Positions 37,860-57,278 of a stretch of DNA of 64,000 bases are shown one piece after another. The stretch lies in sequence record OP380604.1; one strand, 5' to 3'. The position numbers and the translations under genes were made by a program. Each line of letters begins with the position of its first letter. Position 1 is the stretch's first letter. A model generated the notes under the pieces. It was not told where the DNA came from and did no database searches. It saw nothing but the letters and a program-made list of their open reading frames with translations.

Positions 37860-38546
37860 ATGATATTCGGTATTCATGGTAAAAAGCGCAGCGGTAAAGA
37901 TACCGCTGCTAAATTCATTGCGGAATATGACAACTCAATCACCGTTTGTTCGCTTGCTACTCCTATAAAACGGGCATTGGAATTTGCTTCAATGAAAACC
38001 CGTGCTGGATTTAGCTACGCTGATATTGACGGCAAAGGAAAAGATAGAGACGTTGTTGAGTTTAAGCTTACTCGCCAATTCTGGCTTGAAGCAATAAAAT
38101 ATCTCAATGATACCTATATCAAATTCAGCAATGACCAATTTGACGTACTAAATAACATTATAATCGGACTCGACGTTGAACGTCCTATTACAATGCGACG
38201 GATGATGCAGTTGCTAGGTACCGATATTATCGTTGATCGTGTTGATCGCGATTATTGGATCAAGTGTATTGAATCGGAAGTCCGAGTTTGGGGACTCGAT
38301 GTTGTTATTCCGGACATTAGACAAGAACATGAAATCGAATACGTGAGAAAACACGGATTAATGTTCTTTGTTTATCGCGATACAAAAATGTGTGATAATC
38401 ATATCACAGAACGGGGTCTGACTCCGTTAGAACATGAACCAATTATTCATAACGATAGCACATTAGATAGCTTCCGTTATGACGTTTTAAACACTTATAA
38501 GGAATTGAAATGCAAGAACAAGTTCAACAACTGCAAGCACAACTGA
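37860..38546 (+). CDS. gp1: dNMP kinase
   Basis: IHGKKRSGKDT P-loop, RRMMQLLGTDI, VIPDIRQEHE, HITERG. Confidence 0.95.
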   Translation: MIFGIHGKKRSGKDTAAKFIAEYDNSITVCSLATPIKRALEFASMKTRAGFSYADIDGKGKDRDVVEFKLTRQFWLEAIKYLNDTYIKFSNDQFDVLNNIIIGLDVERPITMRRMMQLLGTDIIVDRVDRDYWIKCIESEVRVWGLDVVIPDIRQEHEIEYVRKHGLMFFVYRDTKMCDNHITERGLTPLEHEPIIHNDSTLDSFRYDVLNTYKELKCKNKFNNCKHN

Positions 38547-38743
38547 ACACCCTGAAAGTTCGTCTGTTTGACGCACAGGAAGCCCGTACCCAAGAAACTG
38601 AATTCTATCAGGGTTTCTTTGCTCAACTGGCTAAAGAACTGGGCCTGGAAGGCGAAGCTGCTACCCAACCGGAAGCTTATCTGAAAGCAATCGCTGAACT
38701 CAAAGCTCCGAAAGCAGTTGACGGCGAGCTGGTAACCGAGTAA
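38510..38743 (+). CDS. gp57A: tail fibre chaperone
   Basis: LKVRLFDAQE coiled coil; between gp1 and gp57B. Confidence 0.8.
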   Translation: MQEQVQQLQAQLNTLKVRLFDAQEARTQETEFYQGFFAQLAKELGLEGEAATQPEAYLKAIAELKAPKAVDGELVTE

Positions 38744-39237
38744 TGTTAAAGTCGTTTTCTGAATTCACAGAAGCGACTAAGCAAGACACGCGCGGCACTT
38801 ATGTAGCAGTACGTTACAAGCCGCGCACTGCAATGGCAATTGTTAGAAGATGCAGGGAAATGGGGATACCTAATCTTGTCCCCTATGATAAGCTGCACAC
38901 TACATTGATCTACTCAAGAAAATACTTGCCCGAATTTCAAGCAAGTGGTAAGATCGATAAAGTGTTGCAAGGCGTCATGATACCTGATATCTTTGAAACT
39001 CAAAGCGGCAAACGTGCTCTTGTGCTCAAGCTCACCGACCCATGGTTCGGTGCTAGACACAAAGAGATCAGAGAAAAGCATGGGGCGACTCATGATTATC
39101 CTGACTATCATCCACACATTACCGCTAGTTATGATGTTGGTCCTGATTTTGTTTTGCCAAAAAGCTTTACAATAGATTACAAGCTATGTATACTTGAAGA
39201 GTACACAGAAGATTTAGATTTTGACTGGAGTCCCTGA
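38743..39237 (+). CDS. gp57B: 2H phosphoesterase family protein
   Basis: two HxT/S motifs: LHTTLIYSR and YHPHITASYD. Confidence 0.92.
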   Translation: MLKSFSEFTEATKQDTRGTYVAVRYKPRTAMAIVRRCREMGIPNLVPYDKLHTTLIYSRKYLPEFQASGKIDKVLQGVMIPDIFETQSGKRALVLKLTDPWFGARHKEIREKHGATHDYPDYHPHITASYDVGPDFVLPKSFTIDYKLCILEEYTEDLDFDWSP

Positions 39238-39261
39238 TTCCAGTCTTTTAGAACACATTGA

Positions 39262-39363
39262 CGGGGATTAGTTCAGTGGGATAGAACAACTGCCTTCTCC
39301 TGTGCTTTCCAACGAGAGTACAGAAGAAGCAGTGGGTCACTGGTTCGAATCCAGTATCCTCGG
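39262..39363 (+). tRNA. tRNA-Arg-like gene with 28-nt hairpin insert in the anticodon loop
   Basis: CGGGGAT/ATCCTCG acceptor, D arm with A20, ACTGC/GCAGT stem, T arm; loop CTTCT[28 nt]AA. Confidence 0.8.
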
Positions 39364-39454
39364 CAATGTGTTTTACACAAAAGAAAAAGTCGCGTCGGAA
39401 CTGACACTCATAAAGTCCAATGTACACAAGAGAGTTCCGGGCGCGCATTATTTT

Positions 39455-39539
39455 GGGAGATTGGTGTAATTGGTAGCCGCAGGACACTCAAAATGTCCCG
39501 TCTTCTGACGTACCGGTTCGAGTCCGGTATCTCCCACCA
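39455..39539 (+). tRNA. tRNA-Leu(CAA)
   Basis: cloverleaf, GGACA-CTCAAAA-TGTCC, long variable arm, CCA. Confidence 0.93.
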
Positions 39540-39544
39540 AATTC

Positions 39545-39629
39545 GGGGATATGGCGTAATCGGTAGCCGCGGGGGATTTAAAATCCCAAGTCTTCGGACG
39601 TGTGGGTTCGAGTCCCACTATCCCCACCA
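39545..39629 (+). tRNA. tRNA-Leu(TAA)
   Basis: cloverleaf, loop TTTAAAA, long variable arm, CCA. Confidence 0.93.
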
Positions 39630-39649
39630 AACGAAAAGAGGTTGACACG

Positions 39650-39886
39650 TTGAAACTTGTCTGTATACTGGACCAAGATGAAGACGGAAGCTTTAGTGGA
39701 CGTGTTTATGGTCTAAACGGCATCTGTATTTTCGCTGGAAATCGTTCGGAATACCCGAGTGTAGTGGCATTAGAAGCTGCGAAAGCTCACATCGAAGCGT
39801 CAAAGGAAATGAATTTTGAAATTTTCGTTGACAACAACGCTGGAATCATTGAGAATGACCAGCATGTATTTTCTATCACTGTTTAA
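39650..39886 (+). CDS. hypothetical protein
   Basis: TTG start after GAGGT SD. Confidence 0.6.
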   Translation: MKLVCILDQDEDGSFSGRVYGLNGICIFAGNRSEYPSVVALEAAKAHIEASKEMNFEIFVDNNAGIIENDQHVFSITV

Positions 39887-39895
39887 GGAACTAAA

Positions 39896-40285
39896 ATGTC
39901 CCGTTTTGTTGTATCCCCTGTAGCTGGTAAAATCACCCGTTTCGTAGTCAACTCCGAGAAAGTTGTTGGTCTGGTAAAGCTGCATTCTGGTAAGACTCTG
40001 CTGACTGTAAAAGTTGACGGTCAACTGCCGACTGTGTATACTGTTGCCGAGCGTTTCGAAGATCTGGCGCTGAAACTGAAAGATTGCTACATCAAACGCG
40101 CTGTTGTTACTCCGGTTGAACATCGTGGCATTGCGAAGTTCGTAGTTGGTGCCGACAAGATCGTTGGTCTGCATGAGAACATTCACGGTGAAGTTCTTCT
40201 GAGTTTCCGCACTTCCGAGTATGACGTACCGAATCGCGTCATGATCGAAGAATCTCTGGAAGCTGTTCTGGAAGCTATCGCTTAA
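39896..40285 (+). CDS. hypothetical protein with internal tandem duplication
   Basis: AAGGA SD, terminator after; two similar ~64-aa halves. Confidence 0.8.
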   Translation: MSRFVVSPVAGKITRFVVNSEKVVGLVKLHSGKTLLTVKVDGQLPTVYTVAERFEDLALKLKDCYIKRAVVTPVEHRGIAKFVVGADKIVGLHENIHGEVLLSFRTSEYDVPNRVMIEESLEAVLEAIA

Positions 40286-40292
40286 TTATCAT

Positions 40293-40316
40293 AAGCCCCT
40301 TAACTGGGGCTTTTTT
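40293..40316 (+). terminator. intrinsic terminator
   Basis: AAGCCCC-TTAACT-GGGGCTT plus T-run. Confidence 0.8.
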
Positions 40317-40340
40317 GTAACCTAATCAAGGGAAAATTAC

Positions 40341-41447
40341 GTGGGTTCTTTCAATACTATTTGTGGCGTTAGTCGTCATATCGTTACATGTGGCGAACCG
40401 GTTGTTCTGCTGGCACTCGTTTGTAACGGAGAAACTATTCCAGCCGCACCTGGTTGCTATAACTGGGATCGATACCAGCTCGCTATGCATCTTCCGATGT
40501 ATGCGACATATGATGACTATGGTAACTTCGAGATCGAAGATAACGACGCATACCAAGCGTTCCAAGACATGGTAAAGACTTATATCGTTTGTGACGAAGA
40601 ACGTAATGTTAACATTGATGATCTATTCGATCCGAAAAAGCTGTCATATCAGGACTTGATGCGCGAAGAAGCTTTGTATATTCAGCCAGCTTTCTCATTC
40701 AGCGGTGCAAAGAAATCTCCCGTTATGTTCATGGTAATCAAGCGGAAAGTCTATGATCTGATGGTAGCAGAATATGACCGCACATTGGAACAATCATGGA
40801 ACAAAGACTACGCTATCAAGTCGCATAAAGAGATCCGCGGTACTTTCGCCAGGCTTGAAATTCGCGATCCAGATAAAAAACGCTTGACTAAAGAAGAACT
40901 AGCTTTTAGACTGGAAGAAATAGAGAAGGAGCCAGAGATCATTCGTGATGAACTGAGAAAGGATCTGTTCAATGAATATCTCAGTATGGGTTTCTCCTGG
41001 GAATATGATAGCGTTGTCAATGTAGGAATGGGTCCTTACTCTAAAAACAACTTGACAAACCGTGTTATTAAACTCACTGCTGCTAATGCAGATCTGCATA
41101 TCGGACTCCGTAAGTTTGTTAGCATGTTGTGTGAACTCAACATCGAGTTTAACCCACAACAATACGGCAGTCAGGACAACGATCATCTGTATCATGCCGA
41201 TCTGATGACTCGAATTGTGGTAGCTGGTGCTGAGAATGATCAGACTCGCGAATATCCACTGAAAATTAGTCCAAAATTAGTTGTTAACTTGAATTCGGAT
41301 GCTGTGTCAGAATACATGTATCCAGTCGGTAGCTGGAAAGAAAATCCGGATCTGATTCATGACAAGAACGGCAACATTGTTCCGTCAATGCAGAAGTACG
41401 GTGAGTTCAACGAGATTTCAAACATCGTGGAGTTCAAGGAGGTCTAA
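40341..41447 (+). CDS. hypothetical protein (368 aa)
   Basis: long ORF with GTG start and AGGG SD. Confidence 0.8.
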   Translation: MGSFNTICGVSRHIVTCGEPVVLLALVCNGETIPAAPGCYNWDRYQLAMHLPMYATYDDYGNFEIEDNDAYQAFQDMVKTYIVCDEERNVNIDDLFDPKKLSYQDLMREEALYIQPAFSFSGAKKSPVMFMVIKRKVYDLMVAEYDRTLEQSWNKDYAIKSHKEIRGTFARLEIRDPDKKRLTKEELAFRLEEIEKEPEIIRDELRKDLFNEYLSMGFSWEYDSVVNVGMGPYSKNNLTNRVIKLTAANADLHIGLRKFVSMLCELNIEFNPQQYGSQDNDHLYHADLMTRIVVAGAENDQTREYPLKISPKLVVNLNSDAVSEYMYPVGSWKENPDLIHDKNGNIVPSMQKYGEFNEISNIVEFKEV

Positions 41448-42963: not shown

Positions 42964-43045
42964 GGAGGTGTGGCTCAAAGGTTGAGCGGCAGACTGTTAA
43001 TCTGCGGGTAATAACCCTATGTTGGTTCGAGTCCAACCTCCTCCG
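42964..43045 (+). tRNA. tRNA-Asn(GTT) with long variable arm
   Basis: GCAGA-CTGTTAA-TCTGC, G73, GGGT-AATA-ACCC extra arm. Confidence 0.88.
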
Positions 43046-43070
43046 CAATGATGATTTAAAGATTTGTCAA

Positions 43071-47025: not shown

Positions 47026-47101
47026 AGGGGATTCGCCTAGTTGGCCCAAGGCACCGGGTTTGATCCCGGTATCACAAGTTCGAATCTTGTATCCCCCGCC
47101 A
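47026..47101 (+). tRNA. tRNA-Gln(TTG)-like with a 6-nt anticodon loop
   Basis: CCGGG-TTTGAT-CCCGG; G73, CCA. Confidence 0.75.
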
Positions 47102-56878: not shown

Positions 56879-56888
56879 TGTTTTGTTG

Positions 56889-57005
56889 TCGCGATTAGTT
56901 CAGCGGGAGAGCGCCTCTGATCGCAGAGAAGTATCGGGACCGGTTCGATTCCGTTAAGTGTGGGCACATTGAGAAACGTCACTGGTTCGAATCCAGTATC
57001 GCGAC
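56889..57005 (+). ncRNA. tRNA-like RNA X1 with enlarged anticodon domain
   Basis: acceptor, D and T arms intact; 68 nt between D and T arms; acceptor helix extended to 14 bp; no CCA. Confidence 0.8.
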
Positions 57006-57022
57006 AACAAACAACATTATGC

Positions 57023-57136
57023 TGGCGGTTCGTCTAATTGGTAGGACACTGTAAAATTCATTCTGATAAGAATGTTTTCCGCAATAAATACTCGCCTGTT
57101 AAGCCTGTAATCTGGGTTCGAGGCCCAGACCGCCAG
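57023..57136 (+). ncRNA. tRNA-like RNA X2 with enlarged anticodon domain
   Basis: acceptor, D and T arms intact; 64 nt between D and T; 20-bp flanking helix; CTGTTAA heptamer. Confidence 0.8.
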
Positions 57137-57156
57137 CATAGTGTTGTTAAAAATTT

Positions 57157-57278
57157 GGGGAAGTAGCTCAGTGGTAGAGCAGTAGTCGCAAAAAGCGGAA
57201 TCTGATTAAGATTCTTTACCGCAAACCCTTGCAAAATCAAACTGTTGGTCGTGGGTTCGAATCCCACCTTCTCCGCCA
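57157..57278 (+). ncRNA. tRNA-like RNA X3 with enlarged anticodon domain
   Basis: GGGGAAG/CTTCTCC-GCCA, canonical D and T arms, 54-nt loop in the GTAGT/ACTGT stem. Confidence 0.82.

Follow-up and report, generated by a model that had tools for sequence, protein, structure and literature searches.

An interrupted tRNA-Arg(UCU) gene in Aeromonas phage avDM12-TAAL

The DNA analysed here, hereafter the window, is a stretch of 64,000 nucleotides from Aeromonas phage avDM12-TAAL (OP380604.1), a T4-like member of the Straboviridae; its positions 38000-41000 correspond to OP380604.1 162000-165000 with 100% identity. Direct reading of positions 39262-39363 reveals a tRNA-Arg(UCU) gene in which a 28-nt insert separates two exons of 37 nt each. 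Upstream lie gp3, gp1 (dNMP kinase), a gp57-like small protein and gp57B, and downstream two tRNA-Leu genes followed by the main tRNA cluster. The features of the locus are as follows:

39166..39194, + strand: sigma-70-like promoter match (TTTACA-17-TATACT, 10/12), about 68 nt upstream of the tRNA; consensus scan
39252..39260, + strand: leader arm of an inverted repeat, AACACATTG, identical in all 9 relatives including the insert-less phiAS5
39262..39298, + strand: 5' exon, with the 5' strand of the acceptor stem, the D arm, the 5' strand of the anticodon stem, C32, U33 and the anticodon U34 C35 U36; Rfam, direct reading, compensatory changes
39298..39299, + strand: predicted 5' cut and splice junction, after U36; placed by the uninterrupted phiAS5 gene, cleavage being putative
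39299..39326, + strand: 28-nt intervening hairpin; absent exactly from the phiAS5 allele, MFE fold, 6 compensated insert pairs among 5 versions
39307..39316, + strand: distal-box-like element, U39307.G39316 (bp 9), U39308-A39315 (bp 10) and the closing C39309-G39314 (bp 11), counted from the 5' junction
39326..39327, + strand: predicted 3' cut and splice junction, before A37; conserved fold geometry, fits the RNase III double-cut rule
39327..39363, + strand: 3' exon, with A37 A38, the 3' strand of the anticodon stem, the variable loop, the T arm, the 3' strand of the acceptor stem and G73; Rfam, direct reading
39364..39372, + strand: trailer arm of the inverted repeat, CAATGTGTT, identical in all 9 relatives including the insert-less phiAS5

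The promoter match is weak, the scan having returned 4 sites versus 2.5 expected.

The Rfam tRNA model (RF00005) spans 39262-39363 in full with 53.7 bits (E 1e-8; gathering score 29), and its alignment places a 31-nt stretch where the model has three loop positions. The gene has a 7-bp acceptor stem, a 4-bp D stem with D-loop GGAUA, an anticodon stem ACUGC/GCAGU and a T arm, while CCA is not encoded. The arginine identity elements A20, C35, U36 and a purine at 73 (G73) are present, and once the insert is removed the loop is a 7-nt CUUCUAA. Each half has matches among the tRNA-Arg genes annotated in Klebsiella and Salmonella phages. A preliminary description of this DNA had proposed a genuine tRNA-Arg gene with A20 and G73, which Rfam and direct reading confirm.

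Genes of this kind escape standard annotation. Default ARAGORN overlooks the locus, calling 23 tRNAs in the window and none for Arg; its intron search recovers the gene, but as Leu(aag) in the wrong register. The locus is unannotated in the avDM12 and Ah1 records, labelled as a 105-nt tRNA-Glu(UUC) in that of Aeh1, and given as a two-piece tRNA-Lys in that of PX29. The published tRNA table of Aeh1 contains no Arg UCU and an extra Glu UUC (PMC1524935), an absence that we attribute to such genes being missed or mislabelled. That this is the only Arg tRNA, as first noted, is true for the window and also for the fully annotated Aeh1, where it is the gene mislabelled tRNA-Glu. The one candidate for a second, called 'Arg(tcg)' by ARAGORN (56888-57006), is a tRNA-like RNA of non-canonical form.

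The insert prolongs the anticodon stem

The insert sits between anticodon position 36 and position 37. It starts with a C.A mismatch (bp 1), continues with 10 bp capped by a CAAC tetraloop (39310-39313), and ends with A39325, which pairs with U36, and G39326, which pairs with C35. Eleven stem positions plus the tetraloop thus lie beyond the cut, with bp 7-11 being C-G, U-A, U.G, U-A and C-G. The MFE fold (-40.9 kcal/mol, z -3.5; z -5.2 for the arm alone) contains the 10-bp hairpin with loop CAAC and runs the anticodon stem through the insert as one continuous helix, in which C32 is bulged and U33-A38, U34-A37, C35-G and U36-A follow. The anticodon is wholly base-paired in this predicted fold. 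The boundaries 39299-39326 and the 10-bp hairpin had been recognized correctly in the preliminary description, the hairpin being that of the MFE fold; an additional CTTCT/AGAAG pairing suggested there is not conserved, being restricted to avDM12 and Aeh1 and failing in PX29 and phiWae14.

Presence, absence and covariation among Aeromonas phages

The locus is present in nine related Aeromonas phages, bounded by identical 9-nt flanks, with five insert versions of 26-28 nt, all at the same spot. In phiAS5 the same gene is uninterrupted: its loop reads CTTCTAA, with nothing between CTTCT and AA, and the MAFFT gap of phiAS5 falls exactly on 39299-39326. As this gap is exact and 67/74 exon positions are identical between phiAS5 and the insert-bearing PX29, the presence/absence difference is exact to the base, and the splice junctions are fixed by an allele that lacks precisely the insert. 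This uninterrupted allele agrees with the original proposal that removal of 28 nt yields TCT, whereas the alternative TCG register offered with it contradicts both phiAS5 and the conserved helix geometry.

In a six-sequence alignment, standard pairs occupy 96.5% of pair cells versus 38-50% with slid partners, and 17 pairs have changed on both sides, 6 of them within the insert helix. The tRNA stems are 100% paired across the relatives, with compensatory changes. All five versions share the same MFE architecture (cloverleaf, anticodon stem, bulged C32, four pairs, distal stem), and the U.G pair at bp 9 is invariant among them. A comparison of orthologues for insert position and covariation had been proposed at the outset; it finds the position unchanged and the helix kept by compensatory changes. 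The insert is not a chance feature, its helix being maintained in this way in five versions.

The same design in other phages, metagenomes and bacterial chromosomes

Scanning with sequence patterns showed that the design recurs in about 45 further loci. The Arg pattern gave 38 true loci from JGI metagenomes, seven from GTDB genomes and four new contigs from IMG/VR. It was built from invariant tRNA-Arg positions and permitted insert lengths of 14-23 nt as well; it imposed AG before A37, and that pairing is independent evidence only in the Aeromonas set. A looser pattern gave one tRNA among the 117 matches listed and otherwise noise. The 35 distinct Arg anticodon arms adopt one common fold, with pairing of 84% in the model register versus 39-45% when slid. 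Their inserts measure 24-43 nt (26-28 nt in 23/35, none 14-23 nt) and begin with a pyrimidine in 34/35, and bp 1 or bp 2 is often mismatched. Single-linkage clustering merged almost all inserts, and families were counted by eye.

The carriers are uncultured phages and MAGs labelled Treponema, Chitinophagaceae/Sediminibacterium and Clostridia. In termite-gut Treponema MAGs the gene occupies a syntenic spot between a RelA/SpoT-TPR gene and the V-ATPase operon, with FlaA near, and in one Treponema genome bin the two tRNA-Arg(UCU) copies that were found each have an insert. The Chitinophagaceae carrier contig is 239 kb long, and the gene has ordinary metabolic neighbours there.

The design extends beyond arginine. 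Two tRNA-Gly(UCC) genes on one contig have a 37-nt insert at 36/37 ending in GG, and generic scans identified a tRNA-Glu(UUC) and a tRNA-Thr(UGU), each scoring about 50 bits as a tRNA and each with a 28-nt insert at 36/37, ending in GA and AC, respectively. Whether the tRNA is Arg, Gly, Glu or Thr, the insert ends in two bases complementary to positions 36 and 35. That the insert ends covary with the anticodon across four tRNA species favours the pairing model, and a group I-type terminal G is disfavoured by the variable last base. All carriers in these four species have U34, A37 and A38, which places A/U pairs beside the 3' cut, in line with the proximal-box preference described below.

Three other interrupted tRNA-like genes have a different geometry: a class I tRNA at L172 1273-1367 (minus strand), with a 19-nt GNRA-capped hairpin after CUUAG, a 161-nt 'tRNA-Pro' with a 78-nt insert at L169 5172-5332, and, at L171 1601-1685, a second tRNA-Arg(UCU) in which A38 is followed by 15 nt that form no hairpin.

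Intron types that do not fit

The first reading of the locus held that the insert is too short to self-splice, and this stands: it is 28 nt long and its sequence is far too variable. A group I intron was considered, given the U that closes the exon and the G that closes the insert, and was rejected since the insert is far too small, lacks the core, and has a terminal A or C in the Glu and Thr genes. Rfam gave no intron match for the insert. A bulge-helix-bulge tRNA intron is not compatible with the 35 arms, all of which form a continuous helix with a single C32 bulge, the bulged register (CTTCT/AGAAG) being available only in avDM12 and Aeh1. We also discarded processing of the hairpin as a minihelix by RNase P and RNase Z, where by reasoning the 3' cut would fall one nt off and the stem-to-loop distance varies.

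The insert resembles a minimal RNase III substrate

The two junctions lie 2 bp apart across the helix, which would give a 2-nt 3' overhang if cleavage occurred there; this offset is deduced from the junctions and presumes direct joining without trimming. The two base pairs between the junctions, C35-G and U36-A, are always paired, and one is C-G. In the in vivo RNase III map of E. coli, about 90% of targets have the two positions that separate the cuts paired, preferably as G-C (PMC6212723). From T7 R1.1, Pertzev and Nicholson derived the 34-nt minimal substrate uR1.1, where an 11-bp helix from cut to tetraloop is the shortest that reacts, loss of 1 bp costing 50-fold and loss of 2 bp abolishing cutting (PMC1540722). 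The uR1.1 product (11 bp, tetraloop and 2-nt overhang) is 28 nt long (PMC1540722), and the 28-nt avDM12 insert equals it in size and shape.

The similarity extends to individual base pairs. The distal box combines a U-A pair with a U.G pair, the latter a stringent requirement (PMC1540722). In our fold of natural T7 R1.1, counted from the cut, these are the U.G at bp 9 and the U-A at bp 10, followed by the C-G closing the tetraloop at bp 11, a numbering that we cross-checked against the paper's C9:G30 as proximal-box position 2 (PMC1540722); the avDM12 insert has its U.G and U-A at the same bp 9 and 10. Of the 35 arms, 21 have U.G as bp 9 and 23 have U-A as bp 10; 20/34 distinct inserts have both pairs, and about 40% lack the box. 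The box keeps its position in inserts of 40-43 nt, so that the cut, rather than the loop, is its reference point. According to a review the distal box is not conserved across RNase III substrates in general, so the match is to the R1.1 type specifically.

The proximal box prefers A/U pairs at three positions beside the cut and G-C at the fourth (PMC1540722), and here agreement with T7 R1.1 is only partial. On the tRNA side A37-U34 and A38-U33 conform; on the insert side bp 3 (U-A) and bp 4 (G-C) do, whereas bp 1 (C.A mismatch) and bp 2 (C-G) do not. Against RNase III, the pair beside the 5' cut, bp 1, is C-G in 14/35 arms, and a C-G there acts in vitro as a catalytic antideterminant on the E. 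coli enzyme (PMC1540722). The helix on the tRNA side is also broken by the C32 bulge. Anticodon and D stems of tRNAs stack coaxially, and on that account the tRNA side would offer about one more helical turn, approaching the idealised two-turn substrate. On balance, the anatomy supports well, and we think it probable, that the insert is excised by RNase III.

Hints of insert mobility

Between avDM12 and Aeh1, 27/28 insert positions are identical versus only 50/74 exon positions, and between two freshwater lineages (L204 and L183) the counts are 26/26 and about 33/74 (~45%, ungapped). More broadly, L204 and L208 have inserts identical or nearly identical to those of L183, L187, L203, L207 and L209 within strongly divergent tRNA-Arg bodies. 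Such like inserts in divergent bodies suggest, at the sequence level, either movement of inserts between genes or replacement of the tRNA body. Treponema displays the opposite, with exons identical at 72/74 positions and inserts that diverge with compensation. In phiWae14 only, an ORF of 246 aa lies directly downstream of the tRNA-Arg gene (L009 1216-1956, minus strand), with endonuclease and resolvase-like PHROG matches (best E 6.5e-13) and no Pfam match; it may be a free-standing homing endonuclease. The introns may move between tRNA genes.

Neighbouring gene, flanking repeat and other unusual tRNAs

The gene just upstream (38743-39237) had been described as a 2H phosphoesterase and taken as a clue to splicing. 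It is gp57B, in the 3-1-57B gene order, where the Aeh1 record gives T4 gene names and T4 accessions, and it matches Pfam Acb1, an anti-CBASS cyclic-nucleotide 2H phosphodiesterase, with E 1e-35; its match to the 2'-5' RNA ligase superfamily is weak, while PHROGs and RefSeq name it 'RNA ligase'. The splicing clue is thereby lost, and we treat the adjacency to the tRNA as coincidental.

The 9-nt inverted repeat around the gene would lengthen the acceptor stem into a helix of ~22 bp, T stem included, and could be a processing signal or a recombination site. A scan of IMG/VR with this repeat returned only known isolates, 32 other matches being chance palindromes.

The window also contains a tandem trio of tRNA-like elements (56888-57006, 57021-57140 and 57157-57278) with good acceptor, D and T arms and enlarged non-canonical anticodon regions. 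Members two and three have in common a 6-bp hairpin with a GAT(T)A loop, then TTT(A/T)CCGCAA, and only the third reaches an Rfam tRNA score (54.3 bits). The block is ~89% conserved across the nine relatives, where it is annotated Val, Leu, Ala or OTHER, and a comparison of 56888-57278 with T4 gave no match. At 47026-47101 there is a tRNA (Rfam 47.6 bits) with a 6-nt anticodon loop, UUUGAU, to which ARAGORN makes no assignment and whose Aeh1 counterpart is annotated tRNA-Gln(UUG). The 83-nt tRNA-Asn(GUU) at 42964-43046 has an extra 4-bp hairpin in its variable region, unusual for a class I tRNA.

Proposed rejoining of the halves

The products of RNase III, with 3'-OH and 5'-phosphate ends, are substrates of Rnl1-type ligases without prior healing. 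The avDM12 rnlA gene is intact (OP380604.1 76569-77735), its product being 97.4% identical to Aeh1 RnlA over 100% coverage, and Aeh1 encodes RnlA, Pnk (pseT) and a split rnlB. The phage RNA ligase and Pnk that had been expected from T4-like phages are thus there, RnlA in avDM12 and Pnk also in its relative Aeh1. RnlA occurs in phage T4 too, and its presence there and in the insert-less phiAS5 means that it is not specifically tied to the insert. Aeh1 has no annotated RNase III, and the nuclease would therefore be that of the host. The Aeh1 rnlB consists of two adjacent ORFs, RnlB-A and RnlB-B (L166 16804-17830; Aeh1 166804-167830), and is split or frameshifted. Aeh1 also has a homologue of the CCA-adding enzyme (L166 47433-48476; Aeh1 197433-198476), which fits the unencoded CCA of the tRNA-Arg.

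We know of no ligase for 3'-OH/5'-phosphate ends from bacterial carriers of the Treponema and Chitinophagaceae type. Beside the metagenomic tRNAs, tblastn with RnlA, RnlB, Pnk, 57B and the CCA enzyme of Aeh1 revealed no ligase or kinase in loci of up to 14 kb, a search of limited sensitivity. That the halves are ligated, and by which ligase, we infer, and joining is the weakest link of the model.

A need for the mature tRNA can be read from codon usage: AGA is the second most used Arg codon, accounting for 28.8% of all Arg codons across 45 long ORFs of the window, whose G+C is 41.9%.

A proposed splicing pathway and its alternatives

The best explanation of these data, to which we give an even chance, is excision of the insert by RNase III and resealing by an RNA ligase to give a working tRNA-Arg(UCU). 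In the precursor, the anticodon stem would run through the four pairs into the 11-bp stem with its tetraloop. Host RNase III would act on both strands across the minor groove, one cut following U36 and the other preceding A37, and so release a 28-nt hairpin with a 2-nt 3' overhang. The cloverleaf would keep the tRNA halves associated; their ends would be 3'-OH and 5'-phosphate, and the nick would be sealed by an RNA ligase, here putatively RnlA, of the T4 Rnl1 type specialised for anticodon-loop breaks. The product would be the CUUCUAA loop of a tRNA-Arg(UCU) able to read the frequent AGA codons of the phage. The preliminary description had called for a protein endonuclease plus a ligase without naming the former; that remains the best reading, and the anatomy points to RNase III. 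Extended to all carriers, the proposal becomes a third tRNA splicing pathway of bacteria and phages, in which 36/37 hairpin introns of U34-A37-A38 tRNAs (Arg-UCU, Gly-UCC, Glu-UUC, Thr-UGU) would be processed by RNase III and an RNA ligase; we advance this tentatively, at slightly below an even chance.

Excision might instead be of the heal-and-seal kind, another endoribonuclease leaving 2',3'-cyclic phosphate and 5'-OH ends at the two junctions that Pnk and RnlA, or host RtcB, would join; this corresponds to the scheme of the preliminary description. Aeh1 does possess Pnk, RnlA and RnlB, and ligation of the RtcB type would also cover the bacterial carriers lacking phage ligases. We nevertheless hold this unlikely: no candidate nuclease is known, the neighbouring 2H enzyme being Acb1, and the sequence common to the inserts is limited to what fits the RNase III rules, while the 2-bp offset, the 10-11-bp minimum stem and the UG/UA at bp 9-10 would all be left unexplained. 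RNase III could also act with no religation to follow, leaving halves that do not decode or are otherwise used, and an insert that is tolerated, selfish or tRNA-destroying. This is the documented fate of the intervening sequences of 23S rRNA, and it would spare the bacterial carriers the need for a ligase. A single nick in the anticodon loop, however, inactivates a tRNA, as with the anticodon nucleases PrrC and colicins E5 and D, and yet the cloverleaf stems are kept by compensatory changes; it would moreover strike the sole tRNA-Arg of an AGA-rich phage and both tRNA-Arg(UCU) copies of one Treponema bin, and we judge it quite improbable.

The two other alternatives dispense with processing. 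The transcript could stay unprocessed, shaped like a tRNA but with its anticodon hidden. It would then be a decoy or sponge for host anticodon nucleases or for defence proteins that bind tRNA, unless it had another function outside decoding; a decoy had already been suggested in the preliminary description. The fully paired anticodon speaks for this reading, and so does the presence in the same phages, at 56888-57278, of three more conserved tRNA-like RNAs whose anticodon arms are non-canonical. The reading is weakened by the use of AGA as the second most frequent Arg codon and by the occurrence of the design in syntenic core-chromosome tRNA genes of bacteria; the insert is also dispensable in phiAS5, which has a normal tRNA at the site, insert ends track the anticodon in four tRNA species, and the fit to the RNase III rules would be a coincidence. 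All this makes it very unlikely. The least probable reading, to which we attach hardly any weight, is that of a DNA-level palindrome, selfish or generated by replication, in a decaying gene and with no meaning for the RNA. Identical or near-identical inserts within very different tRNA-Arg bodies do hint at mobility of the DNA, and an endonuclease-like ORF adjoins the gene in phiWae14. The conserved U.G and other G.U pairs would nonetheless be C.A on the other strand, which indicates a structure of the sense-strand RNA, and the exons stay tRNA-like under compensatory change. Mobility and removal at the RNA level are not mutually exclusive.

Comparison with known systems

The closest bacterial parallel to excision by RNase III is found in the 23S rRNA intervening sequences of Salmonella, Yersinia, Campylobacter, Rhodobacter and others, which are 100-200 nt long and excised by RNase III, the rRNA functioning in fragments. 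Like them, the tRNA inserts are hairpins grafted onto the loop of a stable RNA, sporadic among close relatives and variable in sequence, and RNase III cuts in the basal stem could remove them. Unlike them, they measure 24-43 nt and lie in the anticodon loop, where a break should inactivate the molecule, and function would require rejoining. With T7 R1.1 and uR1.1 the avDM12 insert shares the 11-bp helix, the tetraloop, the 2-nt 3' overhang, the U.G at bp 9, the U-A at bp 10 and the closing C-G, and the inserts of phiWae14 and AsFcp_4 have a CAUU/AGUG stretch in common with T7 R1.1. Unlike the insert, T7 R1.1 separates mRNA cistrons, and its natural processing involves a single cut.

The sealing of a broken anticodon loop by a phage Rnl1-type ligase would recall the T4 tRNA repair system, in which Pnk and Rnl1 counter PrrC. 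There, the host attack falls at 33/34 and leaves cyclic-phosphate and 5'-OH ends that need healing by Pnk, whereas here a programmed double cut at 36/37 would give ends ready for ligation.

Self-splicing group I introns of bacterial tRNA genes occur in cyanobacterial tRNA-Leu and tRNA-fMet, Azoarcus tRNA-Ile and Agrobacterium tRNA-Arg. They resemble the inserts in interrupting the anticodon loop and in their sporadic presence among relatives, but have ~200 nt or more, a catalytic core and a terminal G, as opposed to plain hairpins of 24-43 nt with terminal G, A or C. The tRNA introns of Archaea and eukaryotes are defined by a bulge-helix-bulge motif (two 3-nt bulges and a 4-bp helix), cut by the EndA/Sen endonuclease and joined by RtcB or Trl1 ligase. 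The inserts are likewise short and paired with the anticodon, and their proposed removal would likewise involve proteins, two symmetric cuts and ligation; they differ by a continuous helix with no bulge-helix-bulge and by position 36/37 instead of 37/38. To our knowledge, bacteria and phages lack a tRNA splicing endonuclease.

Implications

Protein-dependent tRNA splicing is regarded as an archaeal and eukaryal trait. A 2014 review described bacterial tRNA genes as structurally uniform, with only self-splicing (group I/II) introns (PMC4033280), and our literature search, subscription-only papers not covered, found no account of such tRNA inserts. Short anticodon-loop inserts built like RNase III sites nevertheless occur in at least four tRNA species, in phages and bacterial MAGs. 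In genome records, such interrupted genes are at present missed, left unannotated, or mislabelled as Glu, Lys or Leu.

If the inserts are indeed cut out and the halves rejoined, RNase III, a housekeeping enzyme, would acquire a role in splicing, and the purpose of phage and bacterial RNA ligases would become directly testable with two commercial enzymes; genome annotation would need correction as well. As a speculation, dependence on a phage ligase might tie the AGA-reading tRNA to infection, or shield the anticodon loop from host nucleases. Under the proposed pathway, T4-type Rnl1 and some bacterial RNA ligase would have a routine physiological substrate.
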